Below, in pieces: positions 10,002-64,000 of a stretch of DNA of 64,000 bases. How positions within the stretch are numbered: the first letter of the stretch is position 1; every line of letters begins with the position of its first letter. Under the pieces are notes generated by a model. That model worked only from the letters and a program-made list of their open reading frames with translations, did not search any database and was not told where the DNA came from. Position numbers and translations under genes: made by a program. The stretch is from Macrostomum lignano (Eukaryota), in contig NIVC01000467.1 in assembly GCA_002269645.1 (NCBI GenBank), forward strand, positions 124,001 to 188,000. Direction: 5' to 3'.

Positions 10002-13000
10002 CTACAAATAGATTTGCAGGCACAGAGCTACTGAGCTACGTAAGAAAAAGAACTCAAGGACATGTACATAAGCTCGTACTTGTTAGCTTGAAATTTGGGT
10101 TCAACTGAAAAGAGCGATTGGCTGAGCTACAATATATAAAATTTGAAAAAAATGCTTGGAAACAATTCCCTATAGCTACAGGCAAAAAATGAAATGTTAG
10201 CTGGCTTACAAAATGCATCATGCTTAAAAACACGTGCCTACAGTATGAAAATGAATCCTACAGTAATCACACTGAGCTAAATTCCATTGAAAATGTTTGC
10301 TAGAAAATCAAAGAGCCGAGACGCTGTCAGTTCGCTATGGGTCACCTGCCGGATTCTGTGCAGCACCGGACCGCTCCACTGGCCTCGGAGCAGCCGTGTC
10401 AGTCGTCTGAAATTTGTCATGAAGGGTAACTGGATGTTCACAGTCAGTTGAGGAATAGGTTTAGACATCAAGGGAATGCGGAGTGCATATCTGCACACAG
10501 GTTGGGGAATCGTAGACAACTGGAGAATTGTAGACAGCTGGGGAATTGTAGACAGCTGGAGAATTGTAGACAGCTGGGGAATTGTGGACAGCTGGGGAAT
10601 TGTAGACTGCCGGGGAATTGTAGACAGCTGGGGAATTGTGGACAGCTAATTGTAGACTAATTGTAGACAGCTGGGGAATTGTAGACAGCTTTGTTCAAAA
10701 GACTTTAACTCGTAGATAAACTGATATTTTACAAATCGATGTGTTGATTTTTTATTCACTTAAGCTTACAGTTTCTTTAAAATGTTGAAAAAGATTCAAT
10801 GTTCATTGGACTCTGACAAATCTCGCTTTAGTTTTTCCTGCATGTCAGCAGACAAAGAAAAACTTGCATAGAATCTGTAGATTTGTTCAGAATTCAGCAA
10901 TACTCGGCAGTACAAGCCTTTCCAAATTGACCGTTGTTTTTCTGTATTGAACTTACTGTGACTGTGTATTGAACTTTTCAGACTGTTGGGTGAATGTCAG
11001 TACCTGACCTGAGTGATATTGTGAGCTGAGAGCTTGGGTGAATCGATGGCTGAGGGCTTTGTAGATGCCTGGGAGAATTTTAGGCAGATAAATCATGAGC
11101 ATGCAGTAAATTGGGGCTGATGGATTGAGAATTGGCAAACGGTGTTTAACGGAAAAAAATCAAATTTGGTTTGCATTTAAGTCAGCACCAGGTCATGTAC
11201 AGGCGGGGATGTGACCGAACACTTACCTGGTTCCGGAGGAGTATTTGTGGTTTCTAGTTTAAAATACACAATTCCTTCGCTGCTACCGCATATTTGCTTG
11301 GAATTTCCCGGACATCGATATGAACAAGTTTCGTTGAGTTGTAGTTTATACTCCGCCGGAGGTAGTTCCGATTCGCAAAAGCAGCGATCACCTTCGGCGA
11401 TGGCGAAATATTTGAATCTGCTGTAAAGATCACGCTTCACACACTCGGTAGCGCAAACAAGGTGCGACATGTTATCAGATTTTTTTTTTGGTGCTGAATA
11501 TCCACCTATATGTTCACCGTAATAGTAGCATGCAAATCGGGAATCTAAAACAGTTAAAATCAAAAGCATGGCAGGTAAAAACAAGTGCACAAGCAAGTGT
11601 TTGTGGTTGATAAAAACATGCAGAAATATTAAACTGCAGAACGTGAATCAGAATAGACTGAAATAGTAAACTCACTAGGAATAGCTGGATAGACCTTCGC
11701 TCCCTGCTTCTTTTCATCTGAAGAGGTGACATTATGGGTGAACTCAGTTGAGAACATTTTACAACAGCTCGATCAGATTTTCAGGTCAATTGGAAATGAA
11801 ACCAGGGAGAAAAGCTGGATGCTCTTAGCAGTTCCGACTAAGACCAAACATCCTCATTGCATAGTAACTGTAGACAGCTGGGGCAATTTTATACTGCTGG
11901 GTGAATATCAGATAGCTGGGCGAATATCTTAGGAGAGCTGGGTGAATCGATGGCTGAGGGCATTGTAGATGCTTGGGAGAATTTTAGGCAGGTAAATCAT
12001 GAGCATGTGGCGAATCGGGGCTGATCGATTGAGAATTGGCAAACGGCTATTAACGGAAAAGAATCAAATTGGTTTGCATTCAAGTCAGCACCAGATCATG
12101 CACTGGCGGTGACGTGACCGAACACTTGCCTGTTTCCGGAGGAGTATTCGTGATTTCCAGTTTTAAATACGCAATTTCCATGGAGCCACCGCATGACTGC
12201 TTGTCATTTCGCGGACATCGATATGAACAAGTTTCGTTGAGTTGTAGTTTATACTCCGCCGGAGGTAGTTCCGATTCGCAAAAGCAGCGATCACCTTCGG
12301 CGATGGCGAAATATTTGAATCTGCCGTAGAGATCACGCTTCACACACTCGGTAGCGCAAATGAGGTGTGACATCTCATTCGATGTGAGGCTTACTGTTCC
12401 CGTACCATAATATTGGTAGCATTGAATTGGAGAATCTAAAACAGTTGAAATCAAAAGCATGGCAGGTAAAAACAAGTGCACAAGCAAGTGTTTGTGGTTG
12501 ATAAAAACATGCAGAAATATTAAACTGCAGAACGTGAATCAGAATAGACTGAAATAGTAAACTCACTAGGAATAGCTGGATAGACCTTCGCTCCCTGCTT
12601 CTTTTCATCTGAAAAGGTGACGTCATGGGTAAACTCAGTAGAGAACATTTTTAGAACAGCTCAAACAGATTTTCAAGTCAGGTAGAAATGAAACCAGGGA
12701 GAAAAGCTGGATGCTCTTAGCAGTTCTGACTAAGACTAAACATCCTCATTGCATAGTAACTGTAGACAGCTGGGGCAATTTTATACTGCTGGGTGAATAT
12801 CAGATAGCTGGGCGAATATCTTAGGAGAGCTGGGTGAGTCGATGGCTGAGGGCATTGTAGATGCTTGGGAGAATTGTAGGCAGGTAAATCATGAGCATGT
12901 GGCGAATCGGGGCTGATCGATTGAGAATAGGCAAACGGCTAAACGGAAAAGAATCAAATTGGTTTGCATTCAAGTCAGCACCAGATCATGCACTGGCGGT

Positions 13001-16000
13001 GACGTGACCGAACACTTGCCTGATTCCGGAGGAGTATTCGTGATTTCCAGTTTTAAATACACAATTTCCATGGAGCCACCGCATGACTGCTTGTCATTTC
13101 GCGGACATCGATATGAACAAGTTTCGTTGAGTTGTAGTTTATACTCCGCCGGAGGTAGTTCCGATTCGCAAAAGCAGCGATCACCTTCGGCGATGGCGAA
13201 ATATTTGAATCTGCTGTAAAGATCACGCTTTACACACTCGGTAGCGCAAATGAGATGTGACATCTCATTCGATGTGAGGCTTACTGTTCCTGTACCATAA
13301 TATTGGTAGCATTGAATTGGAGAATCTAAAACAGTTGAATTTAAAAGCATGGCAGTTAAAAACAAGTGCACAAGCAAGTGTTTGTGGTTGATAAAAACAT
13401 GCAGAAATATTAAACTGCAGAACGTGAATCAGAATAGACTGAAATAGTAAACTCACTAGGAATAGCTGGATAGACCTTCGCTCCCTGCTTCTTTTCATCT
13501 GAAAAGGTGACGTCATTGGTGAACTCAGGAGAGAACATTATACAACAGCTCGATCTGATTTTCAAGTCAGGTGGAAATGAAATCAGGGGAGAAAAGCTGG
13601 AAGCACTAGGCAGTTCTGACCAAGACCAAAATATCCCATAGTAACTGTTCTCATAGACAGCTGGTGGGGGGATTTTAGACAGCTGGTGAATTTAAAATGT
13701 TTTGGATTTGGAAGAGTCGGTATGGTTGAGTCGGAAGAATTCGTTGTATTTAGCCTCATTTTAAGAAGATCAAGAATTGGCAAGTGGACTTTAACAGTCT
13801 CAGTTTCCAATCGAATTTGCTAACAGCTTACCAATGTTCGGCGAGTTGGTTATTGTGCTCAGGCTGAAATACACCGCTCCAGTTTCTCCACCGCACGACT
13901 CCATGTGACCTGCTGGGCAGCGGATCGAACAATCTTTCTCGATGCTCAGCCTGTACGAGTCGTGGGGCAGTTCCGGCGCACACAGGCAGCTGTCACCGAA
14001 GGCGAGGCTGAAGTATTTGAATTTCTTCAAGGCATTTTTCTTGCGACACTCGAAAGCGCAAACGCGGTGCGACATTTTTTCATTTTCTATTAGTTCCAGC
14101 TTTGCCATCGGATAGCCTTGGTATATTGAATAGCATCCTATGGGATCTCCTGCAACCGTTGGGGAAAAGTGGTCAAATGTTGCATGAGAAGCATTACATC
14201 AATATAGGAGCCTTTCTTACATGCTGAGGGAATTGTTCTGATATGCTGAGGGAACTGTTCTGACATGCTGAGGGAACTGTTCTGACATGCTGAGGGAACT
14301 GTTCTGACATGCTGAGGAAACTTCTGACATGCTAAGGGAACTGTTCTGACATGCTAAGGAAACTGTTCTGACATGCTGAGGGAACTGTTCTGACATGCAG
14401 AGGGAACTGTTCTGACATGCTGAGGGAACTGTTCTGACATGCTGAGAGCACTGTTCTGACATGCTGAGGGAACTTTTCTGACATGCTGAGGGAACTGTTC
14501 TGACATGCAGAGGGAACTGTTCTGACATGCTGAGGGAACTGTTCTGACATACTGAGGGAACTGTTCTCGAGAGAAAGATCCAGCCAGTCTAAAGCCAATT
14601 CTGCAGACTAGTTCTCACTTGGATTCTGTGTGATGCTCTGCGCTCTGGGATCCGGGCCTGCGTGGTGCGGACGTTGCAGTGTGGTTATAATTACTTTTAC
14701 TTTGAGCTGAAGAATATTATTCATAATTCAACTCTGAATCTGTTTTCTCACCAAAAAAGCTTTGTTTTTTCTGATCCGGAGTTGGCAGAATCGACTTGGA
14801 CTGGTCTGAGTGGTGCGGAGGTTGAAGTGAGTTTGTAATTAATCGAGAGTGTGGTGTAGACACACGGGAGAAATAGTTGCTGCAGTTAGATGGGCACCGA
14901 ATACTTGCCTGGTTTTTGTCGATTAAGATTGAAAAACGCCATAAAATCTTCATTTCCGCAAATTCGAATTAATCCTTTTCTACGAAAACACTTGCCTTTA
15001 CAGTGACTGTCATGAGACAGAGTGGAGGAATCCGGAAGCTCGGACGCACAAACGCATTCTTTATCGTGGCGAATGAAAAAATATTTGTAATTGTCGTAAA
15101 GATCGACATTGATACACCTTTGAGCGCAATCTTCAAAGGGAATCCCTCTTTGAGTAAACACCACATCTGAATTTGCTATCGACATGTCCCAAGCGCAGGC
15201 TGCCATCGATATGTTTTCTGAAATGGTTAAAACTAATTAATTTAGGTAAGAGCAGCTCAAACAGCGGATACATTCAGATGGAAACTTACCCGGTAAAATT
15301 GGATTGACCTTCGGTCCCTGCTCGTATATATCTGAATGATAGAAAATTTGAGAATATAAATGTTTTGAGAAAATTTGATCAAGCTGGGGTGATTTTAAGT
15401 GAACCGATACGGAGCTTCTGGCCAGTGAAATCAACCTAAGAAATGGACTCAAATATTTCGATGACCTTAACTGTATGAGAGCCATTGGAATGCCAGAGAA
15501 ATTATTTTAGATTTTTATTTGATTCGAAACACGCAGCTAGGGAGTTGTAGACTGCCGGGGAATTGTAGACTGCCGGGGAATTGTAGATAGCTGGGGAATT
15601 GTAGACTGCCGGGAAATTGTAGATAGCTGGGGAATTGTAGACTGCCGGGGAATTGTAGATAGCTGGGGAATTGTAGACTGCCGGGGAATTGTAGATAGCT
15701 GGGGAATTGTAGACTGCCGGGCAATTGTAGACAGCTGGGGAATTGTAGACTGCCGGGGAATTATAGACTGTCGGGGAATTGTAGACAGCTGGGGAATTGT
15801 AGACAGCTGGGGAATTGTAGACTGCCGAAGAATTGTAGACTGCCGGGGAATTTTAGACAGCTGGGGAATTGTAGACAGCTGGGGAATTGTAGACAGCTGG
15901 GGAATTGTAGACAGCTAGGGAATTGTAGACAGCTGGGGAATTGAAGACAGCTGGGGAATTGTAGACAGCTGGGGAATTGTAGACTGCCGGGGAATTGTAG

Positions 16001-19000
16001 ACTGCCGGGGAATTGTAGACAGCTGGGGAATTGTAGACAGCTGGGGAATTGTAGACAGCTGGGGAATTGTAGACAGCTAGGGAATTGTAGACAGCTGGAA
16101 AATTGTAGACAGCTGGGGAATTGTAGACAGCTGGGGAATTGTAGACTACCGGGGAATTGTAGACAGCTGGGGAATTGTAGACAGCTGGGGAATTGTAGAC
16201 AGCTGGGGAATTGTAGACAGCTAGGGAATTGTAGACAGCTGGGGAATTGTAGACAGCTGGGGAATTGTAGACAGCTGGGGAATTGTAGACTGCCGGGGAA
16301 TTGTAGACAGCTGGGGAATTGTAGACAGCTGGGGAATTGTAGACAGCTGGGGAATTGTGGACAGCTGGGGAATTGTAGACTGCCGGGGAATTGTAGACAG
16401 CTGGGGAATTTTAGACAACTGAGGAATTGTAGACAGCTGGAAAATTGTAGACAGCTGCGGAATTGTAGACAGCTGGAAAATTGTAGACAGCTGGGGAATT
16501 GTAGACAGCTGGGGAATTGTAGACAGCTGGGGAATTGTAGACAGCTGGGGAATTGTAGACAGCTGGGGAATTGTAGACAGCTGGGGAATCGAGACAGTTG
16601 GGGAACTGTAGACAGCTGGGGAATTGTAGACATTTGGGGAATAGTAGACAGCTGGATATGAAGAGCGTCTTTGGAACTTTTGGTAGTTTGTGAAAAGCAG
16701 TTTCCATTCGAAACAGAAGCAGCTCATGCACAGGCAGTAATATGACAAAATTCTTGCCTTTTTTTGGAGGAACAGTTGTTGAGCTCAGGTTGAAATACGC
16801 TATCTTTTGGTCTGCCCCGCATGACTGATTGTGATTTCCTGAGCACCGATACGAACAAAAGGAATTTTTTGTTTTCTCCGTTGAAGTGGGTAATGTCGAT
16901 GCACAGAAGCAAGTGTCGGAATCGGTGATGGCGAAATATTTGAATTTTTTCCCGTAGAGATCACGCCTAACACACTCGGAGGCGCAAACAAGGTGCGACA
17001 TCTCACTGCTTTGCAACACCTTTGTCAATTTACGTCGAGTTTCGTAGCATTTCAGAGAATCTGAAGCTGATAATGAAAATGAATAACAAATGAGCACAAG
17101 TGCATGGGTATGAATAACATTCAGATGTGTGAAGATTATAATATTCATTGTTAATGAGACAGATTATGCGACTGACAAAGCTTCAAGTTTAACTCACCTG
17201 GAATAACCGGATAGACCTTCGCTCCCTGCTCGAATTTATCTGGAATGGTAAAGTTGTGATTGGACTTTACTTGAGAACATCACTAATATAAGCAGCCTTA
17301 GCTCCTGTGTCAATTAATCTAATTACCTTTTCTCATAGAAGACAGTGTTGTGCTGACGCTGAAATATGCTGCTGCATTCTCGCCACCGCACGACTGCAGG
17401 TGATTTCCAGGGCAGCGATACGAACAATGTACTTCAGGGTTATCGACTATACTTGAGTTCCTAGGCAGTTCCGATGTACACAGGCAGTTTTCACCATTGG
17501 CGAGCCGGAAGTATTTGTATCTTTTTAAGGGACTTTTCCTGGCACACTCAAGAGCGCAAACGCGGTGCGACATTTTAATATTTTGCTTTAGTTCCAGTTT
17601 CACTTCATTATTCACTTTATTCGTTATGAGATAGCAGCCAATACCATTGAAAGATTGGACTGAAATAGTTGGGGACAATTAAACCAAAACTGAGCAGAGT
17701 TTGATGATAGCGATTTGCATCAGTTGCAGGGTGCATGCGAACAATAACGTCTAAGATCTGCTAATATGGAAACTGTTATGACTTGAGCATATTGTTCTGA
17801 CATGCTGAATTGAACTGTTCTGACATGCAGAGGAAACTGTTCTGACATGCTGCGGGAACTGTTCTGACATGCTGAGGGAACTGTTCTGACATGCACAGGG
17901 AACTGTTCTGACATTCTGAGGGAGTCTTTTAATCTGGCGTCCTACCGGGATTTTCGGAAGTGCTCTCGTCTTTCGGTGGATCCTTCTCAATAACCGGAGC
18001 TGCAGCCGACTGAGCTGAAAAGTGGCAGGTATATCCTGAATGCAGCTGACATGCAGAGGGAACTGTTCTGACATGCTGAGGGAACTGTTCTGACATGCTG
18101 AGGGAACTGTTCTGACATGCTGAATTGAACTGTTCTGACATGCAGAGGAAACTGTTCTGACATGCTGAATTGAACTGTTCTGACATGCAGAGGAAACTGT
18201 TCTGACATGCAGAGGGAACTGTTCTGACATGCAGAGGGAGCTGTTCTGACATGCTGAATTGAACTGTTCTGACATGCAGAGGGAACTGTTCTGACATGCA
18301 GAGGAAACTGTTCTGACATGCAGAGGGAACTGTTCTGACATGCTGAGGGAACTGTTCTGACATGCAGAGGAAACTGTTCTGACATGCAGAGGGAACTGTT
18401 CTGACATGCAGAGGGAGCTGTTCTGACATGCTGAATTGAACTGTTCTGACATGCAGAGGGAACTGTTCTGACATGCAGAGGAAACTGTTCTGACATGCAG
18501 AGGGAACTGTTCTGACATGCTGAGGGAACTGTTCTGACATGCAGAGGAAACTGTTCTGACATGCAGAGGGAATTGTTCTGACATGCTGAGGGAACTGTTC
18601 TGACATGCAGAGGGAACTGTTCTGACATGCTGAATTGAACTGTTCTGACATGCAGAGGGAACTCTTCTGACATGCTGAAGGAACTGTTCTGACATGCTGA
18701 GGGAACTGTTCTGACATGCTGAGGGAGTCCTCAAGTCTGGCGTCTTACCAGGATTTTTCGAAACGTCTTTGTCTTTCAGAGGATCTTCCTTGGTTGACAG
18801 CGCTTCATCAGGCTCAGCTGAAAAGTGGAAACATTTTCCTGAAGGCAGCAGACATGCAGAGGGAACTGTTCTGACATGCAGAGGGAACTGTTCTGACATG
18901 CAGAGGGAACTGTTCTGACATGCAGAGGGAACTTTTCTGACATGCTGATGGAACTGTTCTGACATGCACAGGGAACTGTTCTGACATGCACAGGGAACTG

Positions 19001-19389
19001 TTCTGACATGCACAGGGAACTGTTCTGACATGCAGAGGAAACTGTTCTGACATACTGAGGGAACTGTTCTGACATGCTGAGGGAACTCTTCTGACATGCT
19101 GAAGGAACTGTTCTGACATGCTGAGGGAGTCCTCAAATCTGGCGTCTTACCAGGCTTTTTCGAAACGTCTTTGTCTTTCAGAGGATCTTCCTTGGTTGAC
19201 AGCGGTTCATCAGCCTCAGCTGAAAAGTGGCAGGATTATCCTGAATGCAGCTGAGCATGAGCACAAGCAAGCTAAAGCACAAATCAAAGGCAACAAAAGC
19301 TACTCACATTTCTTCTTTGAGGAAGAGCAGCCCAGAGCACCGTAGATGGCTGCGCTAATGCAGAACAGAAGCAGAACCGTTCGGAACAT
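10002..19389 (-). CDS. Signal-peptide-bearing 7x WSC-domain protein, copy 1 (about 930 aa to the end of WSC7, short hydrophobic tail tentative)
   Basis: Signal exon 19389-19308 (MFRTVLLLFCISAAIYGALGCSSSKKK). 69-nt exons 19219-19151, 18817-18749, 18014-17946. WSC exons 17659-17327, 17066-16758, 15217-14909, 14149-13832, 13325-13020, 12435-12130, 11544-11227 show the GCY..CxxxC..CxC..CxxxC..CG pattern. Linker exons 17239-17198, 15331-15290, 14805-14752, 14657-14619, 13498-13457, 12608-12567, 11717-11676. All are phase 1-1. 3' exons 10406-10346, 10104-10080 and 10035-10002, followed by AATAAA near 9975, are tentative, and the link from WSC7 to them is unresolved. Confidence 0.85.
10500..10690. 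repeat. Intronic 18-bp minisatellite (gacagctggggaattgta)
   Basis: About 10 units. The paralogous array is at 25850-26070. Confidence 0.9.
14215..14566. repeat. Intronic 22-bp minisatellite (ctgacatgctgagggaactgtt)
   Basis: About 16 units between the 39-nt linker exon and WSC4. Confidence 0.93.
15535..16650. repeat. Intronic 18-bp minisatellite, large array
   Basis: About 60 units with gactgccgg and gatagctgg variants. Confidence 0.96.
17790..19135. repeat. 22-bp minisatellite array interleaved with 69-nt exons
   Basis: ctgacatgc(a/t)gaggg/aaactgtt units, interrupted by exon cassettes at 17946-18014 and 18749-18817. Confidence 0.93.
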
Positions 19390-21939
19390 GCTCAGGTCGA
19401 AGCGAGTTAGATCAGCTGATCTGCGCAGATTTTTGTTGAACTTTGAAAGGAAGGTTTTTTGTTTCTCCTAGTTGCTGTCTGGTAGAGTCTTGTGAAAAGT
19501 GCAAATTCAGCTTATCGAAAGCAGAAATTCTGAAAGCATTTGGGCTCGGGATCAGCAGTAGAAAAGGGTCTGAGCCGCTCGGTTCAGCCACAGACGCAAC
19601 TGTACATCTCAGTCAGCGGGCTCTGGCCATAGACAGTTTGCATTTGCTGGATTTTAGTTGTGTATTAAAGAATATCTAACAGTGCACAAATTCTTTTTAG
19701 AATGGTCATGATAGTTAATTTTGTAAATCTGTACTGAAAAGTACATGTTACTCGGATTGAAAACGAAATTTGTTTTGTGGCATGGCAAGGATCTTATATT
19801 CCCTTGATGGGCCTCTCTCAGTCTCAATGCATTCAATAAGAAAAGACTGACAATAGGAAAAGCCTATTGGTCCATTCTCTGGCGCTCTGATGTGTCAGCG
19901 GCCCAGGCTCGATTCCAAGTGCAGTCGCATTAATTTGAGGCTAAATTGGAATCTCGGCTTGGCTCTGCTCGTGCAATTAACGCCCAGCTTGAGGGCCAAC
20001 CTCCAAGGCACAGTGAAGTGCACATGCAGTGCACTTTTACAGTTTTTTGCATTTTTTTCTATACTGCTAATAGTTAAGCATACATACTATGCACCAATCG
20101 ATGCGCAATTCAAGGATACACAAATGTGGAAGTTTTCAATTCTTAAACATTTGGAATCAGGAAGTTATCGACGAAAGACTAAAAATCATGATCTCAAACT
20201 GCTTTGAGGAAAAGTGCTCATTATAATTTTTGGAATATGGAAGAAACAATTCAACGCCGTCATTTAATTCCAAACTAACTGTACTTTAAGGTACTGCGAT
20301 GATTTTTTATTGAAAGAGCGAAACCTGTTTAAATATTTGAAAAAAATGGAAAAAAGTACCTTTTTTCATAGAAATACACTCTTTTGACTGCTTAATCCGA
20401 TTGCCAACAACAAAATAGTTGCTTTCCTGCTGGTGCAAACCGTTATTAGGGTGAATTTTCAAAATTGCATACTGTGCCAAAAGTAAATTGAAGCTTAATA
20501 TTTATAAACATTAGAAACTGGACCACTAATGGGTATTTTACTTTGGTTACTTACTATGGAGTAAACTGGCACTGGCAGAGACAGATTTGAGAGAAACTAA
20601 TTGCTCCATTGTATTTAGGCTCCAGCGTTACAAATTACAATAGCTATTTCGGGGTCTAACCGGCTAAGTTATCAAAAAAGCTAGATAACAATCACCATGT
20701 TTCATCATCAGCTATACCTACCTACCACGATTTTATAGTCACATGCAGCAGTAATAGTGTGTAATACCCTTCTTTAAAAGTTTTCAATATCTAAAATGAT
20801 GTGTTAAATTTTATAAAATTTCATAAACAGTGGTTTGAAAGAAGCTACTTTTGTGCGAAAATACACTCTCATTAATACCGTACCTATTATTGTATTTATT
20901 GTATATGACCTATGAAAGTTGAAGCGTAAATTGTACTTTTCTAATTTTATTTTGTCATTCGTTTGCGCACTCGGGCCGGCCTGCCTGTCTTGTGGGGTGT
21001 GGTGGCCTTGGCCACTTTCTCCCCCTTCTGTTAGGATCCAAAACACTTGAAAGCTTGCCTCAAGTGTACATTTAATATTATCGATCGATTATTTAAAACA
21101 AGCCTCTAGTGGTTGGTGTTAAGAGTGAGTGGCCTTGAGTGTACCCGAAAGCGAGAGGAAGCCCATGGGGGGACTATATGAACCTTCCTTTTGTGGAAAG
21201 TTGGGCCTTGTGCATTGCATAGTGTACGCTACACAAGGCAGAAGGTAAAGAGAAAGAGAACGACAGGCTAGCCAATAGCGATAGCATGTGCTTCTCTCCA
21301 GTACACTATGGTAGGGGGGGGAGGGGGTGTCAGACGGCCCAACTCTAACCCCCATACCCAAAACAGCGTACATGTAGAATAAGAAGGGATTGGGTCCAGA
21401 TAAGTCTTCTCAATGTACATGTATGTACAAAGACAAACACTGACGAGAAAAATGGCTCTAAACCATTGTTATTGTTACACTGTGTGTGTGTGTCTATTTT
21501 TATTAACTTGACTTTGACTGGTCTTTACTCTTTAGCATGGTCAAGGATAATTACTGTTACTTTGTAGTGACCTTGTACTAAACCTTTGCAAAACTTTCAG
21601 CCATTCATGCAGTAAACATTTCATTCTAGAAATTTCCTCGCTATACCGTATATGATTCTAAATATAGTAACTTGAATTCCCGCGCGAACTCTTTCTAGAA
21701 AACTCCCTCTTCCAGAATGTTCCATGAGAAAGATATAAATATAAAGCACCCGCAATCAAACGGTTGCAGTTTCTTCGACCTATCTTACGAACCTATCTTA
21801 TTAGCAATAATATTAAGAACCACCGCCTTTACGCCTTATTCATTTAAATTCCTACAACTTCCTACCAAATGTACCAATTAATTGCATAAGATTAAGAAGG
21901 AATAATACAATCGAAGTCGAACCCATGATCACTTGACCC

Positions 21940-22860
21940 TAGGGATTCCAATCCCGGGATCCCGGGATCCCGGGATTGGGGCCAAAAATCCGGGATTTGA
22001 ATCCCGGGATTTTTTTGGGAATCGAATCCCGGGATTTTTAATCCCGGGATTGCAAAAGTCCGGGATCGGGATCCCGGGATTTCAAGGCCTTAATCCCGGG
22101 ATTGGTCCGGGATTAGAACAACCTTTCAATGCCTAAATTAGATAATTTAAAGTCTAAACGTTTATTTGAATAATAAAACATTTATTTGTTTTTGCTGTTT
22201 CTCAATGAAACGCTAAACATTTGCAAAGCTCCTGTCCTAATTGATCTAAAAATTGTTAATGTGAACTGTAAATGATAGATAATTTTAACTTTTTTCGTTT
22301 TCCACCACGAGACGAGACTGAGGGCCTTTTCATAGTGCTTGTTCTGGTTCCAGAAGCAGAACCAATTTGTGAAGTATAACTTTTTGTCTCCATAACTATA
22401 GGGAGTTACGTGCTATAAAGTTTTTATTATTGAATGACAGTCGCCAAAAAGAAAGTGAAAAATCGTGCAAAGTGAGGCTGTTAAGGCAGTCAAATATTAA
22501 CAGAGTTTAATAGTTATACTGCTGTTTTTCTTGGAATTCCGAACCGATTCTGGTTCTGGAATTGGTAACATGAAAAGGCCCTGAGACTCTGAGAGTCGCG
22601 AGACCATGACTACTGCACGCGGCACGCCGCACAGTCCGTCTTAGGATTCCAATCCGGGATCCCGGGATCCCGGGATTGGGGCCAAAAATCCGGGATTTGA
22701 ATCCCGGGATTTTTTTTGGAATCGAATCCCGGGATTTTTAATCCCGGGATTGCAAAAGCACCGGGATTCCGGGATTTTGAATCCCGGGATTTCAACAGCA
22801 TCGGGATTTCGGGACTATTCAATCCCGGGATTGTAAAATGTCGGGATTTTGGAATCCCTA
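21940..22860. mobile_element. Non-autonomous hAT-type element (MITE) 1
   Basis: TIRs TAGGGATTCCAA...TTGGAATCCCTA. 8-bp TSD CTTGACCC at 21932-21939 and 22861-22868. Many subterminal ATCCCGGGAT palindromes. No ORF. Confidence 0.9.
22322..22581. mobile_element. PIF/Harbinger-type MITE nested in hAT MITE 1
   Basis: TIRs GGGCCTTTTCA...TGAAAAGGCCC with 3-bp TSD TGA. The empty site (gagactgagactc) is visible in the sister element near 23326-23338. Confidence 0.85.
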
Positions 22861-22999
22861 CTTGACCCACCCACCCATCACTTCTGATTCTGACCTACAT
22901 GTATCTATCTGCTATATCCTGCCAGTTTCTCCAGTTTTATGGGTCTTGGTGATTCGAGCAATTCCATTACATTTTATCGGTACTTTGCACAACTGCAGT

Positions 23000-38648: not shown

Positions 38649-38649
38649 T

Positions 38650-47100: not shown

Positions 47101-47742
47101 ACCCAAAAAACAAGGCTGAGGTTAAGCCTACTTCAAGGCTAAGCTTGCTTCATGTGCCTGAACAATCTAGGAGAAGGTCTGAGAGGCTTAAATTATCATC
47201 ATCATCATCATCACAATCATTATCACATCATCATTCACATTCACAATCACATCACAATCACAATATACTTATACTAAATCTCTAAGGTCTGTCTGACCGG
47301 TATTCCAGTCTACAGCCTGAATTCTTGAACCGATTTTTTCAAACTTTCTTTATTCGATTGCCAATGGGAAGTTGGTTAAATATTCGAAAAACGAGTTTTT
47401 TTAATGCTTTCAATGGAAAGCTAGAAAAGGTCAAAATCTCACTAACTGAATTTCAATTCCAATTAAGATTGCGCCACAACTTTTCTCTGTTCACTGTGTA
47501 CGCCTCAATACTGGCTGCAATAAGGGCCGGAGAGGAAAATAATGCTCAGTGGCTTGCGTGTTTACATTCTGACCCTGGCTGACTGGCGGACTGCATAGAC
47601 AATTGCTATTTATAGATTTCACTCAACTGTGTATTGGCTCTGCCTGCATACAACATGTGCACACTGAGCAGCCTATCAGTGCTATGTATTTGACTGCAGT
47701 GCCAAAGCATATATGGCTGATTTTTGCGCCCTCCGATCAGTA

Positions 47743-47823
47743 GGCGGAATAGCCGCAGTGTAGGCACTAGGACTAGGTATAGGCTAGGCGTAAGGTCCAA
47801 GGTTCGAGTCTGCCTCTTCGGCA
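47743..47823 (+). other. tRNA-derived (SINE-head-like) degenerate sequence
   Basis: A-box-like TAGCCGCAGTG and B-box GGTTCGAGTC (47801-47810), with an imperfect acceptor-stem-like pairing. Does not look like an intact tRNA. Confidence 0.4.
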
Positions 47824-48779
47824 AATGATTAAAATTAAATTAATTTATTCATTTAAACCTTGTGCCTCAACTAATTGGAATATTTTTGTTTAATTCCCAA
47901 GGCACACTTAATGAATAATTTTTGCCATACAAAATTATTTAAGTTCACTAAGAGAAAATTTGATTTGTAAAAAACTGCTTCGAGTATTACTCATCGCATT
48001 AATGGGTATTGCCTAGCTCCATGAAAGTATGAAAATGCTAAGCTGCTAAATTTATTGTTAAAATGAAGGCTGAATTGTGAAATTGTGTATCGAAAATTGA
48101 TTAGTGAACCGTAATAAATGCTGAGAAAAAATCAGATTCTTGAAAGAATCCTTTATTTCAGCTGAGGATACTGAGGAGCCGGCTGAGAGGAGAACTGCAG
48201 ACTGCTGAGGGGAACTGCAGATTGGCGAAAAGATCATTCATGCAGACTGCAAAGGGGATAAACTGCTGAAGTAATTCCTCTAGCCTTATAAGCGTATAGC
48301 TGAAAACTGCTGAGAGGGACTACAGTTTAAGTGATTAAGTGCAGGTTGTTTAGGGGATTACTGTGGACTGCTGAGTGAATTATTGTGGTTTGCTGAGGGG
48401 ACAGTTCTAGGCTGCAGAGGGGATAAATGCTTAATGTGGTAAAAGTTATAAATTCTGCAAATGGGATAACTCCAGGCTGCTAAGATAATGACTGCAGTCT
48501 GTTTTGTGGGATTAGAAGGGATAATTTCAGGTTGTTTTGGGGGATATCTCAGGAATTGCTGAGATGTCATGGCTTTTTGGGGCAATTTGGGGCAGGATAT
48601 GATCTTTGCCCCAGACTTATGAACGTATGGCTGCAAACTGCTGAAGTGGTAACTGTGGACTACTGTGGACTGCGAAGTAAATTTTTGTTTGCTGTGGGGT
48701 CAATTCTATGCCGCTAGAGTATGACTGCAGTATGTTTTTTGGGATTTGAAGGGATAATTTCAGGTTGTTGTGGAGACAT

Positions 48780-49140
48780 CTCAGGAATTGCTGAGATGCC
48801 AAAGCTTTTTGGTTGAATTGCTGAGATGTCATGGCTTATTGAGAGAATTGCTGAGATGTCAAGGCTTATTGGGAGAATTGCTGAGATGTGATAGCTTTTT
48901 GAGGTAATTTCTGAGATTTCAAGGCTCACGGGAAATTGCTCAGATGTCAAGGCTTACTGAGGGAATTCTTGAGATGTCAAGGCTTACTGAGGGAATTACT
49001 GACATTTTAAGGCTTACTGGGGAATTGCTGAGATGTCAAGGCTTACTGGCCTGGGAGAATTGCGTAAATGTCAAGGTTCGAGTTTAATTGCTGCGATGTC
49101 GATGCTTACTGAGGGAATTGCTGAGATATCAAGGCTCATG
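48780..49140. repeat. Degenerate about 22-bp tandem repeat (gaattgctgagatgtcaaggctt) inside the hAT element
   Basis: About 12 imperfect units. Confidence 0.8.
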
Positions 49141-52100
49141 GGGATGGCTGAATTGTTGGGGGAGGGGGTTAGGTTGTTGAGCGATTGTAAGATGGTCAAG
49201 TACTTGTAGCTCATTTAATTCAGATAATAATGAAATAGTACACACAAGTGATGCTGAATTCTGCTGATAGGAAATACCAGCGTATTTATTAAGGTTTGAT
49301 TCTTTGAGTTAGGCTAATAAAGAGGGGGTTCAACTAGCCTGCGGACCAGAATTGGCCAGGCCAATGACGATATGCACTAAGAGTTCGTGCTTGAAAGGAT
49401 AAGCACTATTTACTGATTGAAGGGTGTTGGGCTGATAAAGGAAACTTTTTTGCTGGGGAAAGTTTTGATTCATGGCAATTTATTTTTGTTAAAAATAAGA
49501 AAAATTAAATTTCTGATTAATGGAAATGGAAAGTAATGGTTACTCTTGGGCCAAAATGGCAAAGCGGGGGGCTGAATGGCTAGTATGCATCTAAATTCGG
49601 TAAGCATTGTTTTTGCAAACACTGGGTATCGGAATAGAGTATCGGAATTAGGGTATCGCCGATGCTCAAATTTGGGTATCAGACTTTCAGGTATCGGCGA
49701 TATTTTTTTCAGAAAGGGTATCAGAGTATCGGTTTTCACAGATACTTTTTTTGAGTATCGTGCCCAACACTGGTAAATCATGAGCATGCGGTGAATTGGG
49801 GCTGATCGATTAAGAATTGGCAAACGCATTCGAGTCAGCACCAGCTCATGCACAGGCCGTGAGGTGACCGAACACTTGCCTGATTCCGGAGGAGTATTCG
49901 TGATTTCCAGTTTAAAATACACAATTCCCCAGGGACTACCGCATGACTGCTTGTCATTTTGCTGACATAGATATGAACAAGTTTCGTTGAGTTGTGCCTT
50001 ATCGGTCGCCGGAGGTAGTTCCGATTTACAAAACTCCGTTAGTTTCCGTTAGGTCACCGTTAGCGATGGCGAAATATTTGAATCTGCCGTAGAGATCACG
50101 CTTCACACACTCGGTAGCGCAAATGAGGTGTGACATCTCATTCGATGTGAGGCTTACTATTCCCGTACCATCATATTTGTAGCATTGAATTGGAGAATCT
50201 AAAACAGTTAAAATGAAATGCATTGAGGGTAAGAACAAGTGCACAAGCAAGTGTTTGTGGTTGATAAAAACATTCAGAAATATTAAACTGCACAAGATGA
50301 ATCAGAATAGACTCAAATAGTAAACTCACTAGGAATAGCTGGATAGACCTTCGCTCCCTGCTTCTTTTTATCTGAAGAGGTGACATTGTGGATGAACTCA
50401 ATAGAGAACACTTTAAATCAGCTCGAACAGATTTTCAAGTCAGGTGGAAATGAAACCAGGGAAAAAAGCTGGATGCTCTTAGCAGTTCTGACTAAGACCA
50501 AACATCCTCATTGCATAGATAACTGTAGACAGCTGGGGCAGTTTTATACTGCTGGGTGAATATCAGATAGCTGGGCGAATATCTTAGGAGAGCTGGGTGA
50601 ATCGATGGCTGAGGGCATTGTAGATGCTTGGGAGAATTGTAGGCAGGTAAATCATGAGCATGCGGTGAATTGGGGCTGATCGATTGAGAATTGGCAAACG
50701 GCTTTTAACGGAAAGAATCAAATTGGTTTGCATTCGAGTCAGCACTAGCTCATGCACAGGCCGTGAGGTGACCGAACACTTGCCTGATTCCGGAGGAGTA
50801 TTCGTGATTTCCAGTTTAAAATACACAATTCCCCAGGGACTACCGCATGACTGCTTGTCATTTTGCTGACATCGATATGAACAAGTTTCGCTGAGTTGTG
50901 CCTTATCGGTTGCCGGAGGTAGTTCCGATTTACAAAAGCAGCGGTCACCGTTAGCGATGGCGAAATATTTGAATCTGGCATAGACATTCTTCACACACTC
51001 GGTTGCGCAAATGAGGTGTGACATCTTTTTAGATGTCAGTTGAAGATTCATTACATTAGAAATTTTGAAATTGTAGCATGCAAATGGCAAGTCTAAAACA
51101 GTTGAAATCAGATGCATTGCAGGTGAGAACAAGTGTACAAGCAAGCGGTTGTGTTACAAAAAAGCAGAAATATTAAACTGCACAAGATGAATCAGAATGA
51201 ACTCAAATAGTTAACTCACCTGGAATAGCTGGATAGACCTTCGCTCCCTGCTCGTATTTATCTGAAAAGACAAAGTTGTGGGTGAACTCAGAAGAGAACA
51301 TTTTACATCAGCTCAAATATATTTTAAGGTCAGGTGGAAATGAAATTAGGGAGAAAAGCTGGAAGCTCTTGGCAGTTCTGACAAAGACCAAAACGTCTCC
51401 ATAGTAACTGTAGCAGTCGGTATAATTTTATACTGTTGAGTGAACGTCAAATAGCTGGGCGAATATCGTATAAGAGCGGGGTGAATGGAAGATGGCTGAG
51501 GCACACTTGCTGTTTCCGGAGGAGTATTTGATGTGGTCAGATTTGAATACACGAATCCTATTGGGCTACCGCATGATTGCTTGTCATTTTGTTGACATCG
51601 ATACCAGCAAACATGTTCGCCATCATATTTATAAATCGCCGGAGGTAGTTCCGATCTACAGTAGCACCGGCTACCGTTAGTGATGGCGAAATATTTGTAC
51701 ATGTCGTTGACAGTACGCCTCACACACTCGGTAGCGCAAATAAGGTGTGACATCTTATTAGATTTTAGTACTGGATGATCATTCCGGTAATCGTTCTTAT
51801 TAAAGAAGTAGCATGCAACTGAAGAATCTAAAACAGTTAAAATTAAACACACAGCAGGTGAGAACAAGTGCACAAGCCAGCGTTTTTGGTTTATAGTAAC
51901 TCACCCACTTAAACTCAAACTCACCCGAAATAGCTAGATAGACCTTCGCTCCCTGCTTCTTTTTATCTAAAATGCAAAATCGTTATTCAATTGTTATAGA
52001 AAGCAGGGCAATTAAAAGACAAGTGGGGAATTGCAGACAGCAGGGGAATTGTAGATAGCTGGGGAATTGTAGACAGCTGAGGAATCGTAGACAGCAGCGC

Positions 52101-52499
52101 AATTAAAGACAGCAGGGCAATTAAAGACAGCCTTGGAATTGTAGACGGCTGGGGAAATTTAGACAGCAAGGCATTGTAGACGCAGGAGATGATACGTATC
52201 TCGCTAAAACTACCGGATCACTTATGACACAAAGGCAAGATAAGTGATTTCATAATGACAGATCACAGACCAGGGTGAAGTTGCTCTACTGAAGTAAGAA
52301 ATTTGTAATTCAACTCAAAATCTGACTGGTGTCTCACCTGGATCTTCCGAAGTGCTTTTGCCTTTCGAAGTCTCCTGGCTAGTCGGAGCTGCATTAGTCC
52401 CAGCTGAAAAGTGGCAGTTATATCTTGACTGCAGCTTAGCATGAGCACAAGTTAAAGTGCAAAGTCTTTTGGAGTGAATGTTTGTACACAATTTGGGAA

Positions 52500-54180
52500 A
52501 CGGTAGAAAGTTGGAGGGATTGTAGAGAGTTGGGGAATTGTAAACAGCTGTTGAATTTTAAACAGGTGGGGAATTGTAGACAGGTGGGGAATTGTAGACA
52601 GGTGGGGAATTGTAGACAGGTGGGGAACTGTAGACAGCTGGGCAATTAAATACAGCTGGGGAATTGTAGACAGCTGAGGAATCGTAGACAGCAGCGCAAT
52701 TAAAGACAGCCGGGGAATTGTAGACAGCTGGGGAATTGTAGACAGCTGAGGAATCGTAGACAGCAGCGCAATTAAAGACAGGTGGGGAATTGTACACAGC
52801 TGGGGAATTGTAGACAGCAGCGCAATTAAAGACAGCCGGGGAATTGTAGACAGTTGGGGAATTGTAGACAGCTGAGGAATCGTAGACAGCAGCGCAAATA
52901 AAGACAGCCGGGGAATTGTAGACAGTTGGGGAATTGTAGACAGCTGGGGAACTTTAGACAGCTGGGCAATTAAAGACAGGTGGGGAATTGTACACAGCTG
53001 GGGAATTGTAGACAGCAGGGCAATTAAAGACAGTTGGGGAATTGTAGACAGCTGGGGAATTGTAGACAGCTGGGAAATTGTAGAGAGCAGGGCAATTAAA
53101 GACAGGTGGAGAATTGTAGACAGTTGGGGAATTGAAGACAGCAGGGCAATTAAAGACAGCTGGGGAATTGTAGACAGCTGGGAAATTGAAGACAGCAGGG
53201 CAATTAAAGACAGGTGGGGAATTGTAGACAGCAGGGCAATAAAAGACAGCCGGGGAATTGTAGACAGTTGGGAAATTGAAGACAGCAGGGCAATTAAAGA
53301 CAGCTGGGGAATTGTAGACAGTTGGGGAATTGAAGACAGCAGGGCAATTAAAGACAGCTGGGGAATTGTAGACAGTTGGGGAATTGAAGACAGCAGGGCA
53401 ATTAAAGACGGTGGGGAATTGTAGACAGCGGGGCAATAAAAGACAGCCGGGGAATTGTAGACAGTTGGGAAATTGAAGACAACAGGGTAATCAAAAACAG
53501 CTGGGAAATTTTAGACAGCAGGGTAATTAAAGACAGGTGGTGAATTGTAGACAGCTGTAAGGATTGTAGACAACTGGGGAAATTGTAGACAGCTGGGAAA
53601 TTGTAGACAGGTGGGGAATTGTAGACTGCTGGGCAGTTAAAGACAGCTGAAAAATTGTAGACAGCAGAGCAATTATAGACAGCTGAGGAATTGTAGACAG
53701 CAGGGCAATTAATGACAGCTGGGGAATTGTAGACAGCTGGGGAATTGTAGACAGCTGGGGGAATTGTAGACAGTTGGGGAATCGTAGACAGCAGGGCAAT
53801 TAAAGACAGGTGGGGAATTATAGACAGCAGGGCAAATAAAGACAGCCGGGGAATTGTAGACAGTTGGGGAATTGTAGACAGCTGAGGAAGTGCAAACAAC
53901 TGGGAAATTGTAAACAGCTGGGGAATTGTAAACAGCTGGGGAATTTTAAACAGCTGGGGAAGTGAAAACGTTTTTGGGAATGGTAGATATCTGGGGAATT
54001 GTAGACAGTAGGGAAATTTTAGCTAGCTATGGAATTGTAGACAGCTGGGGAATTGTAGACAGTTGGGGAATTGTAGACAGCTGGGGAAGTGTAAACAGTT
54101 GGGGAATTTTAGACATCTAGGGAAGTGTAAACAGCTGGGGAATTGTAAACTGTTTGGGAATTGTAGACAGCTGGGGGAAT
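52500..54180. repeat. Intronic 18-bp minisatellite, diverged variant array
   Basis: gacagctggggaattgta units mixed with gacagcagggcaattaaa variants. Confidence 0.93.
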
Positions 54181-57100
54181 TAGCTCGTTTATTTTCTACA
54201 TGGATACTGGCAAACGGAGTAAATTATTTAGTACAAGTATTAGACTTAGTACTGTGCTGCAGCAAAATGCTTATCAAAAGGCAGCGCTATCACCGAATAC
54301 TTGCATGGCTTTCGTCGAGTGAATTCGAAATACGCGTGCCACTTGTAGCCTACGCAAAGTTTGCCTTGAAAAGACTGTTTGCAATCAGTGTCATTTATTT
54401 TATGCTGCTCTGCAGGTATTCCCGATGAACAGTAGCACTTTCTAGCATTCTCAATGGCGATGTATTTATATTTGTCGTAGAGATCGTCATCGATACACGC
54501 TTGAGCGCAAACCTTGTAGGACATAGGTTTACTAGGGTACATATAAGTGACATCTACATGTGATTCATCATAAAAGCATCCTGTCAATCGAAAGTTGTCT
54601 AAAACGGTTAAAACAAATCAATTTAAATAAGAGCAGGTCAAACAGCCGAATTATCTCAGACGGAAACTCACCTGGAGTGACCGTCGCTCCCCGCTCGTAT
54701 TTATCTGAATAATGGAATTATTTTAGGTTGTATTCAACAGGCAATCAGTTCTTGAGCAATTAATAATAGATGCAGCTCAAGAGGCAGTGACTAAAGAGTC
54801 ACCACAGAGAAGGTAAGAGACGGCAAAAGAGTTGAGATAAATAAAATAGAGCTGAAGTGACGGCAAGATTATGGAAATTATATTCATATTTCCATTAGAA
54901 TCAAAACTGGCACTTGCAAGGAAGTAGGATGACAAAGTACTTGCCTGGCTTGGGAGAAGAGAGTGTTGTGCGCAGGTTGAAATACGATATTGCACCATTG
55001 TAACCACACGATTGCCTGTGATTTCCAGGGCATCGACTTGAGCATTTCTCGATTTTAGTAGCCATATCTCGATCAGGTAATTCCGATGCACAATAGCATT
55101 TGTTACCGCTGTCAATGCCGAAGTATTTGAACTTTTCGTAGAAATTACGCCTCACACACTCGGTTGCGCAAACAAGGTGTGACATCCCTCTTCCTTTTGC
55201 CAGTACAATTGGTACATGAGCCGGTATATTGTTTTTCAATTGGCATCGGATCGGGCGAGACTCTGAAACAAGTGACCACAAGTAGATAAGCTGCTATCGA
55301 TGGTTTCGTAATGACATACGAAACAGTGGGAGGAAAAACGTTAAAACCGCCCCAAGACCGACAACCACCCGAAGACCGACGAAAAACACAACTCACGTGA
55401 CTACAAAAGACTGACTGAGATGCACGAGGGACAGAGCGAGAGAGACGGTCGCTTAATGGATAATTCACGGGCGATTGAGTCAGATTTGTTAGGGATGTCC
55501 AGCGGCTGTTTGGATGTGGGAAGAATGTAGATCGTCCTCAAACCGCCATTATCTCATACACCGAGACCATATGAGAGACAACCAACGCAGGCAGATACAA
55601 CCACTTGCAGTGAAACGGATGACACGACTGAAAGAACTTAACTGGAAACTCACCTGGAATAACTGGATAGACCTTCGCTCCCTGCTCGAATTTATCTAAA
55701 AAGGTAAAGTTTTGGTAGAACTCAGTTAAGAACAGATTACATTATTTTGAGCTGATTTTGAGCAATGTAGAAAATACTTAATAGTTAAAAATCATATATC
55801 ATCGAAAATTAAAAGAAATAGCACAAGTGAAGTAGGCTTCTTTTGGGCTTATTTGGCCACTGGATTTTACATTCGGAACTGTATTTTTATACATGTGCTA
55901 ACCTTTGCCATTAGTAACCTTTGCTCTGTGTTAATCTAATTGGTAAAAATTTGACCGTTTGTTTACCTTTCTTTGTAGAAGACAGTACTGCGCTCAGGTT
56001 GAAATACGCTACTGCCATATCCCCACCGCAGGATTGCCGGTGATTTCCTGGGCAACGATGCGAGCAATGTACTTCAGGGTCAAGTTCTGTTGGCAACATC
56101 CGAGATTCAAGTTCCGATTCACACAGGCAGGTGTCACCATAGGCGAGCCCGAAGGATTGGGATTTCTTTGGACTTTTCCCAGCACACTCGAGAGCGCAAA
56201 TGCGCGGCGACATTTTCTTCAGCTCAGCTCTAGGACCGATTCCGTAAACTCGATAGCATCCACCCGAATCAGTTGGAAACAGATAGCAAAGTCGTCAGTT
56301 GCAGTGTGGATGAGAAGCATTTATACTGCTAATACGAATTTGAACTGTTCTGAAATGCTGTTCTGACATGCTGAGAGAACCGTTCTGGCATGCTGATTGG
56401 TACTGTTCTGACATGCTGAGAGAACCGTTCTGGCATGCTGATTGGTACTGTTCTGACATGCTGAGGGACTTCTTCTGACATGCTGAATAGAATGGAGTGC
56501 TAATCTGAGCCAGTTATTTTTGTCTTTACTTTTAGCATCCTTTTTAGCATACCTTTAGCATCTTTTAGCATTTTAGCATTTAGTCGTTTTCTCGTCTCGT
56601 TTTCGTTTTCGCCCCCTCTGAAAGGTGTGTCCCAGCAAAGTACGAGCTCACATCAAAATATGCTTTTTCAGAGTTTTAGTTTTTGTGTAGCTTAACTTAG
56701 CTGACATGCCCTTCGCTGCTAGAATTGCAGGCATTTCTTTTTCATGGTCAGTGAGGCCACTCCAGAGCAAATTTTCTCCCAGAGGAAATTGGAGGAAATG
56801 GAGGAAACCTAGAGGCTTGGAGGAAATTCTGGAAGGACAAAACTTCCTCCAAATATTTTTACAAGATTTAAATTCAGGTGAACTTAAACATAATGTACAG
56901 AGGGACACCGATTGAATTTTTATGCAAAGCCTTGCATGCTGTTCCCACTGTATAGTCCTACATAGTCCACTATTTTACTTTCAGAGGTGGACGAAAAGGA
57001 ACACAAGACGAAAACGACTTTGTCTATGGCAACCCTGAAGTTTTTGTGGGTTGCCGGAGCTGCAGTAGTTCCACCTGTTATACCCTGAATGCAGCTGAGC

Positions 57101-58069
57101 ATGAGCACTAGCTAAAGTGCAAATATTTCTGGAGTGAATATGTGCACACATACAGTATTCGGGAATTGTAGACAGCTGGGGGAATTGTAGACAGCTGGGG
57201 AATTGTAGACATGTTAATATGCTGAGGGAACTGTTCTGACATGCTGAGGGTACTTTTTGACATGATGACAGATGAGAAAAATGTATTTATTAAAGTGGAA
57301 TCAATCATGACAGGAAGGCAGGAAGTCATTCGATAGTGACAGTTCACAGACCAGGGTGAAGTTGATTTTCTGAAGGCGAATCGCTCTGGTCTTTCGGCGA
57401 ATCCTCCTTGGTTTCCGGAGCTGCATCAGGCTCAGCTGAAAAGTGGCAGGATTATCCTGAATGCAGCTGAGCATAGGCACAAGCAAGCTAAAGCACAAAT
57501 CAAAGGAAGGAAATGCTACTCACATTTTTTCTTTGAGGACGGGCAGCTCAAAGCACCGTAGATGGCTGCGCTAATGCAGAAAAGAAGCAGAACCGTTCGG
57601 AACATGCTCAGGTCGAAGCGAGTTAGATCAGCTGATCCGCGCAAATTGTTGTTGAACTTTTAAAAGGAAGGTGTCTTGTTTCTCTTAGTTGCTGTCTTGT
57701 GAAAAGTGCAAATTCAGCTTATCGATAGCAGAAATTCTGAGAGCATTTGGGCTCGGGATCAGCACTATAAAATGGTCCGAGTCGCTCGGTTCAGCCACAG
57801 ACGCAACTGTGCATTTTAGTCAGCGGGCTCTGGCCATAGACAGTTTGCATTTGCGGGAATTCAGTTGTGTAATAAAGAAAGGCTAAGAGTGCACAAATTC
57901 TTTTTAGAAGGGTCATGGAAATTGATTTTGTGACTTCTGTACTGAAAAGTACATGTTACTACGGATTGAAAACACGAAATTTGGTTTGTGGTAAAAGTTT
58001 CATTAAGTGTTTGGGCCGAAGCAAAGTAAGTACGATTTTATAATTAGCTTATTGAGCTAAGAGGTTATA

Positions 58070-63980: not shown

Positions 63981-64000
63981 CTGAATGTGCAACTGCGACG

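Follow-up and report, generated by a model that had tools for sequence, protein, structure and literature searches.

Among the described counterparts of the genes considered here are candidate prostate secretions of the same flatworm, Macrostomum lignano. WSC domains are enriched among prostate-limited transcripts in the portion of Table S1 of PMC5977470 covered here, the prostate gene RNA815_80.4 (Mlig-pro5) encodes two WSC domains (PMC4490696), and Mlig-pro46 and others resemble WSCD2 (PMC6953679). Here we analyzed a 64-kb stretch of the M. lignano genome (positions 124,001 to 188,000 of contig NIVC01000467.1, assembly GCA_002269645.1; hereafter the window) that carries three tandem minus-strand genes, copies 1 to 3, each with seven WSC-encoding segments. 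The cluster is probably part of an M. lignano-specific, fast-evolving family of secreted WSC-repeat proteins that changes by germline birth-and-death and possibly serves as a gland secretion.

Mlig-pro5, -pro4, -pro11, and -pro46 are likewise secreted, WSC-containing, multi-copy, and fast-evolving, but they differ from the window family in having other Mlig identifiers and much shorter transcripts. Outside the species, the oyster "putative fungistatic metabolite" K1QKY9, Saccostrea LOC134282764, and fungal and Diplonema arrays are also secreted and carry 4-23 tandem WSC domains, with a resemblance to the window genes at the domain level only. WSC matches occurred in 2,987 protein clusters, many with 4-23 tandem domains; this survey rests on an exhaustive profile search, a profile search of a word-indexed protein database having returned only two fragments. 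Class 1-1 exon-shuffled mosaic proteins (Patthy) similarly have one domain per exon, phase-1 introns, and in-frame gain or loss of modules, whereas the window genes amplify a single domain type and place each inter-domain linker on a micro-exon of its own. SpTransformer/185-333, FREPs, and Dscam-hv are also repeat-flanked, modular, clustered genes with mosaic variants; unlike them, the window family lacks homology to any of the three and gives no sign of somatic diversification, RNA editing, or mutually exclusive splicing.

Searching protein sequences with the WSC exons joined end to end gave significant matches from M. lignano only, named "WSC domain-containing" or hypothetical. These relatives (BOX15_Mlig015297g1, Mlig009330g1, Mlig000913g1/g3, Mlig000975g2, Mlig013029g1, and Mlig010030g1) share with the window genes the signal peptide (M-F/L/I-R-T/A-VLLLFC...), a 14-residue linker, and the WSC cassette types, as well as phase-1 exons, GC donors, and satellite-filled introns, and they are 38-73% identical to the window-built query at the protein level in best local alignments. 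They differ in lying at other loci, with other cassette orders and numbers, whereas the window has three genes in tandem; DNA identity between the window and four paralogous loci of assembly GCA_002269645.1 is at most about 95%. The suggestion of the first-pass annotation that the system is possibly undescribed holds only in part. M. lignano annotation already lists the family as WSC domain-containing proteins, and the prostate or seminal-fluid candidates of the species include secreted proteins rich in WSC domains (PMC5977470, PMC6953679, PMC4490696).

Exon design and predicted product

Exon-sized open reading frames (ORFs) with WSC matches fall into three groups (∼11.2-17.7, 26.6-33.1, and 45.5-56.2 kb; ORF listing and Pfam scan), with one domain per frame and seven such segments per gene above the Pfam WSC gathering score. 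Ten tested exon-containing ORFs scored 30.8-49.1 bits against the PF01822 cut-off of 27.8, single exons gave E values of 3e-7 to 7e-13, and running the Pfam WSC model on the spliced product, the check proposed at the outset, yielded seven stretches in copy 1 (E = 9.7e-65). Motif scans placed the start codons at 19389, 34962, and 57605, each with a copy of the signal-peptide exon motif MFRTVLLLFCISAAIYGAL(G/S)C, and found the peptide D-x-x-x-QGAKVYP-x-IP recurring between WSC exons as the conserved 14-residue linker that joins the domains.

Copy 1 comprises 19 coding exons (an 82-nt signal exon, three 69-nt N-terminal linkers, seven WSC exons of 306-333 nt, seven inter-domain linkers of 39-54 nt, and an 8-nt terminal exon encoding DD-stop), which concatenate to an intact ORF of 932 aa; the 21 exons of copy 2 concatenate to 978 aa. 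In both copies each WSC domain and each linker has its own phase 1-1 exon (17/17 internal exons of copy 1, 19/19 of copy 2), as do the exons of paralogous loci L001-L004. All internal exon lengths in copies 1 and 2 are divisible by 3, and phase 1 is also kept at the end of the 82-nt signal exon and at the start of the last exon. Such uniformity is far beyond chance and reflects serial duplication of a few ancestral cassettes. Phase 1-1 symmetry is a general mark of shuffled or duplicated extracellular modules (Patthy). Linker micro-exons of 33, 39, 42, 54, 66, 69, and 84 nt all have AG acceptors and GT donors, and WSC2, 3, 5, and 6 of copies 1 and 2 have GC donors (CAG/GCAAGT type). The first-pass description of a modular locus with symmetric cassettes, an unbroken phase 1-1 run from the signal peptide to WSC7 in copies 1 and 2, linker micro-exons of 33-84 nt, and GC donors holds. 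Its count of three paralogs stands as three genes with seven WSC segments each, but copies 1 and 2 are near-identical and copy 3 is damaged as assembled. As a side observation, WSC2 has a tandem acceptor (tatcag/CTTCAG/ATTC) with sites 6 bases apart, both in frame (17066/17060 and 32472/32466, minus strand), the upstream of which is used in a paralog model.

When mapped to their own loci, the paralog models P0001, P0002, P0003, and P0006 reproduce the phase-1 exon design, the linker micro-exons, and the GC donors of the WSC exons. Given that the GenBank models of this assembly come from genome-guided RNA-seq assembly (PMC5730564), the shared exon design and GC donors lend independent support to the window gene models.

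The N-terminus, MFRTVLLLFCISAAIYGALGC, looks on inspection like a signal peptide: its n-region is basic, its core hydrophobic, and the residues just ahead of the likely cleavage site are small. The predicted product consists of this putative signal peptide, a short acidic Pro/Lys-rich N-terminal region, and seven WSC domains; inspection for a hydrophobic C-terminus and Pfam on spliced copy 1 revealed no membrane anchor or other domain, and the protein is therefore predicted to be secreted and to bind multivalently. Eight Cys columns are invariant in the family alignment, and every cassette of copies 1 and 2 has all eight. An AlphaFold model of one cassette (predicted local distance difference test score 80.6) is structurally closest to the WSC domains of human Kremen1 (template modeling score, TM, 0.64-0.66) and the yeast Wsc1 sensor (TM 0.62-0.73), and more distantly resembles PAN/apple modules. 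The premise that WSC domains bind carbohydrates is true for some, but these closest solved structures are a protein-binding domain (Kremen1) and a sensor and mechanosensor (Wsc1). A polyprotein cut at dibasic linker sites was considered and rejected, as several linkers (DKFEQG, DIYEQG) lack a dibasic pair.

Duplication, conversion and cassette number

Copies 1 and 2 lie in the two units of a segmental duplication (Table 1), at the lower boundary of which a 46-nt satellite sits exactly (9296-9519, 4.9 copies; 24566-24940, 8.2 copies), suggesting either exchange mediated by the repeat or a join made during assembly. Apart from satellites, the units differ most in a segment of ∼577 bp that is found upstream of copy 2 and missing upstream of copy 1. 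Over 8.86 kb the copies differ by 19 substitutions, of which 15 are in satellites, three in other non-coding sequence, and one in an exon (V to L, WSC3); the coding sequences differ by 2 substitutions and by two extra linker exons in copy 2. With 4 differences in about 6,700 aligned bases outside satellites, the copies are hardly independent paralogs; they would stem from a very recent duplication, or else be two haplotypes set in tandem by the assembly.

Copy 3 is divergent, older than copies 1 and 2, and not intact as assembled. Its WSC1' has CTG in place of the AG acceptor, the WSC4 donor reads ACAG/CAAGT with one G lost, a +13 nt replacement introduces stop codons into WSC6, and WSC3' is degenerate, with a weak CAT/GC donor and one conserved Cys missing. 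Two WormBase-derived fragments, P0005 and P0013, agree with copy 3 at nearly every residue, intron read-through included, and an origin of the window in another Macrostomum species was rejected on this ground. P0005 comes from another assembly and its WSC6 exon is intact, so some lesions may be haplotype-specific or errors; copy 3 appears to be either decaying or carrying assembly errors.

These observations raise the question of whether the cluster is partly an assembly artefact, with copies 1 and 2 being one gene (haplotypes or homeologs) laid in tandem and the copy 3 lesions long-read indel errors, which we consider possible but doubtful. The 4 differences in about 6.7 kb outside satellites would fit, as would the concentration of copy 1/2 differences in repeat lengths, the nature of two copy 3 lesions (a 1-nt loss in a GG dinucleotide at the WSC4 donor and the WSC6 replacement inside a short local repeat), the intact WSC6 exon of P0005, and the known redundancy of M. 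lignano assemblies (PMC5730564). Against it, the 64-kb window contains zero Ns, a unique 3.7-kb spacer (20913-24626) separates the duplication units, copies 1 and 2 differ by entire exon-bearing repeat units, and the copy 3 WSC1' acceptor change and WSC3' Cys loss are substitutions, not indels. Family members apparently are tandem neighbors elsewhere too, with Mlig008847g1 and Mlig031420g1 sharing one contig.

Cassette and linker numbers change among recent duplicates, as the first-pass annotation had proposed. N-terminal linker exons number five in copy 2 vs. three in copy 1, and part of this excess comes from a 293-nt higher-order unit, combining the 22-nt satellite with the 69-nt exon, of which 2.4 copies lie at 33452-34140. 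Relatives carry 3, 5, 6, 7, 8, or 10 WSC domains per gene, and the number differs even within pairs clustering at ≥90% identity (P0001 with 8 vs. P0007 with 10; P0003 with 5 vs. P0011 with 7). At L001 (10500-30300), a 66-nt linker exon, GTNAAPTSQDTSKVKTTLEDP, occurs in 11 copies with intact splice sites, at ∼2-kb spacing, inside the 18-nt satellite. The introns of the window genes are packed with the 18-nt and 22-nt satellites (Table 1), and such arrays around exons can drive unequal exchange. The M. lignano genome contains 15% tandem repeats and 180 Mb of blocks at ≥95% identity (PMC5730564), so the intronic satellites and near-identical duplicates are in themselves background features.

Conversion tracts and a chimeric exon, also noted at first pass, were likewise observed. 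Three 890-bp units of copy 1 (linker exon, intron, WSC exon, intron) form a mosaic: they are identical for about 120 nt surrounding the linker exon, differ at about 50% of positions in the first 80 nt of WSC7, and show 0-3 differences per 40 nt mid-exon. The WSC7 protein is tripartite, with an N-terminal loop like L001 WSC6, a center identical to neighboring WSC5, and a C-terminus like L001 WSC8. P0005 starts with a WSC4/WSC5 hybrid, a sign of unequal exchange between cassettes.

Table 1. Coordinates of the WSC genes, their exons and associated repeats in the window.
Feature	Position	Strand	Remark
Duplication unit A	9292-20913		Partner 24626-37086, 99-99.6% identity
Duplication unit B	24626-37086		Additional ∼577 bp upstream of copy 2, at about 35600-36177
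Copy 1	10399-19389	minus	Intact gene
Copy 1 signal exon	19389-19308	minus	
Copy 1 N-terminal linker exons	19219-19151, 18817-18749, 18014-17946	minus	
Copy 1 WSC1	17659-17327	minus	
Linker after WSC1	17239-17198	minus	
Copy 1 WSC2	17066-16758	minus	GC donor
Linker after WSC2	15331-15290	minus	
Copy 1 WSC3	15217-14909	minus	GC donor
Linkers after WSC3	14805-14752, 14657-14619	minus	
Copy 1 WSC4	14149-13832	minus	
Linker after WSC4	13498-13457	minus	
Copy 1 WSC5	13325-13020	minus	GC donor
Linker after WSC5	12608-12567	minus	
Copy 1 WSC6	12435-12130	minus	GC donor
Linker after WSC6	11717-11676	minus	
Copy 1 WSC7	11544-11227	minus	
Copy 1 terminal exon	10406-10399	minus	DD-stop
Copy 1 AATAAA	9978-9973	minus	
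Copy 2	25747-34962	minus	Intact gene, 21 coding exons, 978 aa
Copy 2 N-terminal linker exons	Starts 34792, 34566, 33939, 33646, 33420	minus	Five
Copy 2 WSC1 through WSC7	33065-32733 (WSC1) through 26928-26611 (WSC7)	minus	
Copy 2 terminal exon	25754-25747	minus	
Copy 3	44937-57605	minus	Damaged as assembled
Copy 3 signal exon	57605-57524	minus	
84-nt linker	57435-57352	minus	
Copy 3 WSC1'	56269-55967	minus	No AG acceptor
Linker after WSC1'	55695-55654	minus	
Copy 3 WSC2'	55262-54945	minus	
33-nt linker	54704-54672	minus	
Copy 3 WSC3'	54598-54305	minus	CAT/GC donor, one Cys lost
66-nt linker	52403-52338	minus	
Next linker	51966-51925	minus	
Copy 3 WSC4	51827-51510	minus	Donor lost a G
Linker after WSC4	51261-51220	minus	
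Copy 3 WSC5	51092-50784	minus	
Linker after WSC5	50371-50330	minus	
Copy 3 WSC6	50198-49880	minus	+13 nt, stop codons
Linker after WSC6	46072-46031	minus	
Copy 3 WSC7	45899-45594	minus	
Copy 3 terminal exon	44944-44937	minus	
18-nt satellite	15534-16655		CAGCTGGGGAATTGTAGA, 62 copies; WSC2-WSC3 intron of copy 1
18-nt satellite, further sites	30940-32061, 52503-54181, 10503-10690, 25851-26056, 45039-45284		
22-nt satellite array	18046-19128		Around N-terminal linker exons
22-nt satellite, further sites	14214-14567, 29598-29973, 33680-34358		

Outside the gene family, a frameshifted retrotransposon remnant with RVT_1 (E = 3e-23) and RNase H ORFs lies between copies 2 and 3 (41886-44132, minus strand), where GC content reaches about 0.54. 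A 15-nt tandem repeat, CCCCGGTGCTAAATC (1-1808, about 121 copies), can be read through in more than one frame as PVLKPPVLNE-type peptides and is probably a satellite rather than a gene. A 23-nt satellite occupies 4032-4815 (35 copies), and a 22-nt satellite at 7589-8366 (35 copies) yields long spurious minus-strand ORFs. Plus-strand ORFs at 4931-6921, with a weak rhodopsin-family G protein-coupled receptor match (7tm_1, E = 5.6e-6, under the gathering score) and a Cys-rich C-terminal tail, probably belong to a neighboring receptor gene. An unrelated neighbor gene at 62220-63992 (minus strand) has a 590-aa Ser/Thr/Ala-rich ORF with a Gln/Lys/Glu-rich, probably coiled-coil end and a weak ALMS-motif match (E = 0.0016, under the cut-off). 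Elsewhere in the assembly, paralog model P0006 stops early in its third WSC exon after a frame change (L003:14836-15039; …CLCAKKNTYVWAWRF); further cassettes follow in the DNA, pointing to a frameshifted duplicate or an assembly indel error.

Weighing the explanations

We regard the locus as a real but fairly ordinary exon-duplication gene family. Germline unequal crossing-over and gene conversion would grow, shrink, and homogenize it (birth-and-death with concerted evolution), with no programmed diversification mechanism invoked, and the product would be a multivalent extracellular binder of glycans or proteins that a secretory gland releases. The most plausible guess is that it is secreted by a reproductive gland or some other gland, by analogy with the WSC-containing prostate-limited candidates.

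Pairwise ratios of nonsynonymous to synonymous substitution rates (dN/dS) between cassettes are mostly 0.5-1.25. Conserved scaffold columns (cysteines and core) have a dN/dS of 0.22 (purifying, p about 1e-5) and variable loop columns a pooled dN/dS of 1.11 (p = 0.73 vs. 1; single pairs 1.4-2.7), a contrast inflated by the definition of the scaffold/loop partition on the same alignment and drawn from estimates disturbed by gene conversion, which breaks the assumptions of pairwise dN/dS. The variable columns comprise three regions, namely the loop from the first Cys to the MSH helix, the Cys4-Cys5 loop, and the stretch after CGG. The loops evolve near neutrally, under selection that is neither purely purifying nor demonstrably positive. 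The dN/dS check proposed for these loops thus revealed more than purifying selection, with a value nevertheless not significantly above 1.

The two limits on these estimates weigh against the birth-and-death gland-secretion reading, as do several further points. At L001, the annotated RNA-seq-derived mRNA includes 4 of the 11 genomic 66-nt linker exons; either identical exons were collapsed by short reads or inclusion varies, and, as short-read models cannot count identical exons, linker inclusion there may be variable. The family's Mlig identifiers were not found in the full-text papers searched, and in the supplements of PMC7336406 and PMC5730564 the searches met either no entry or genes that share the cluster numbers without being family members. 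Of Mlig-pro1-76, 18 transcripts have published Mlig mappings, and none of these belongs to the family; the one prostate WSC transcript compared, RNA815_80.4, is unrelated in its signal peptide and domain sequence beyond the domain type.

The last two points also count against the more specific proposal that the family is itself one of the rapidly evolving WSC-domain prostate or seminal-fluid secretions passed on at mating in M. lignano, an explanation we hold only tentatively and think rather unlikely. Its appeal lies in the likeness of Mlig-pro46 and others to WSCD2 (PMC6953679) and in the two WSC domains of RNA815_80.4 (PMC4490696), in the mapping of prostate WSC genes, like the window family, to multi-copy clusters, and in the presence of a signal peptide (by inspection), the lack of an anchor, and the high overall dN/dS of 0.5-1.25. 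The prostate candidates, however, are short in the part of their table covered here (about 0.26-1.4 kb, compared with coding sequences of 2.8-2.9 kb here and up to 4.2 kb in relatives), and the signal- and WSC-exon strings are missing from the candidate-transcript sequences of PMC4490696. A search for WSC domains in the flatworm, planarian, and mucus literature found nothing relevant.

Much less probable is a diversifying recognition system, as envisaged in the first-pass annotation, in which phase-1 cassettes would be combined by alternative splicing and/or germline or somatic rearrangement into variable glycan binders with roles in immunity, mucus, or adhesion. In other animals, GC donors have been linked to alternative splicing. 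The symmetry of all exons, the weak GC donors on WSC exons, the varying cassette number among duplicates, the variable loops with dN/dS of 1.4-2.7 in some pairs, and the 11 genomic linker exons of L001 vs. 4 in its annotated mRNA all point in this direction. Phase 1-1 exons, however, do not indicate programmed diversification, symmetry being the general rule for extracellular modules. Combinatorial cassette use finds no support in the RNA-seq-derived paralog models, which use the GC donors and contain, in a single full-length form for each locus, every WSC cassette encoded there; no isoform is recorded. Loop dN/dS, when pooled, does not exceed 1 (p = 0.73), and satellites and near-identical duplicates belong to the genome background (PMC5730564). 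Nothing was found tying the family to immunity: immune context is absent from the window, and the genes have no sequence relation to FREPs or SpTransformer. Unannotated cassettes in the 30-kb intron of L004, which would indicate skipping, were sought and none is present. Least probable of all, and hardly to be expected, is a flatworm recognition system in which exon-bearing satellites would generate germline cassette-number alleles, and weak GC donors with symmetric exons variable inclusion, giving each individual a secreted, polymorphic and combinatorial set of multivalent WSC binders for microbes or mates; the 11 genomic vs. 4 annotated linker exons of L001 would be compatible with it.

Under the birth-and-death reading, the locus illustrates how domain number in a secreted repeat protein changes via symmetric exons and intronic satellites, how cassettes are homogenized by conversion, and how a rare GC donor spreads through cassette duplication. 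It also draws attention to an uncharacterized, fast-evolving secreted family in a flatworm in which sexual selection and regeneration are studied. Should these proteins turn out to act in seminal fluid or in recognition, cassette polymorphism would offer a ready marker for work on sexual conflict or on interactions between host and microbe.

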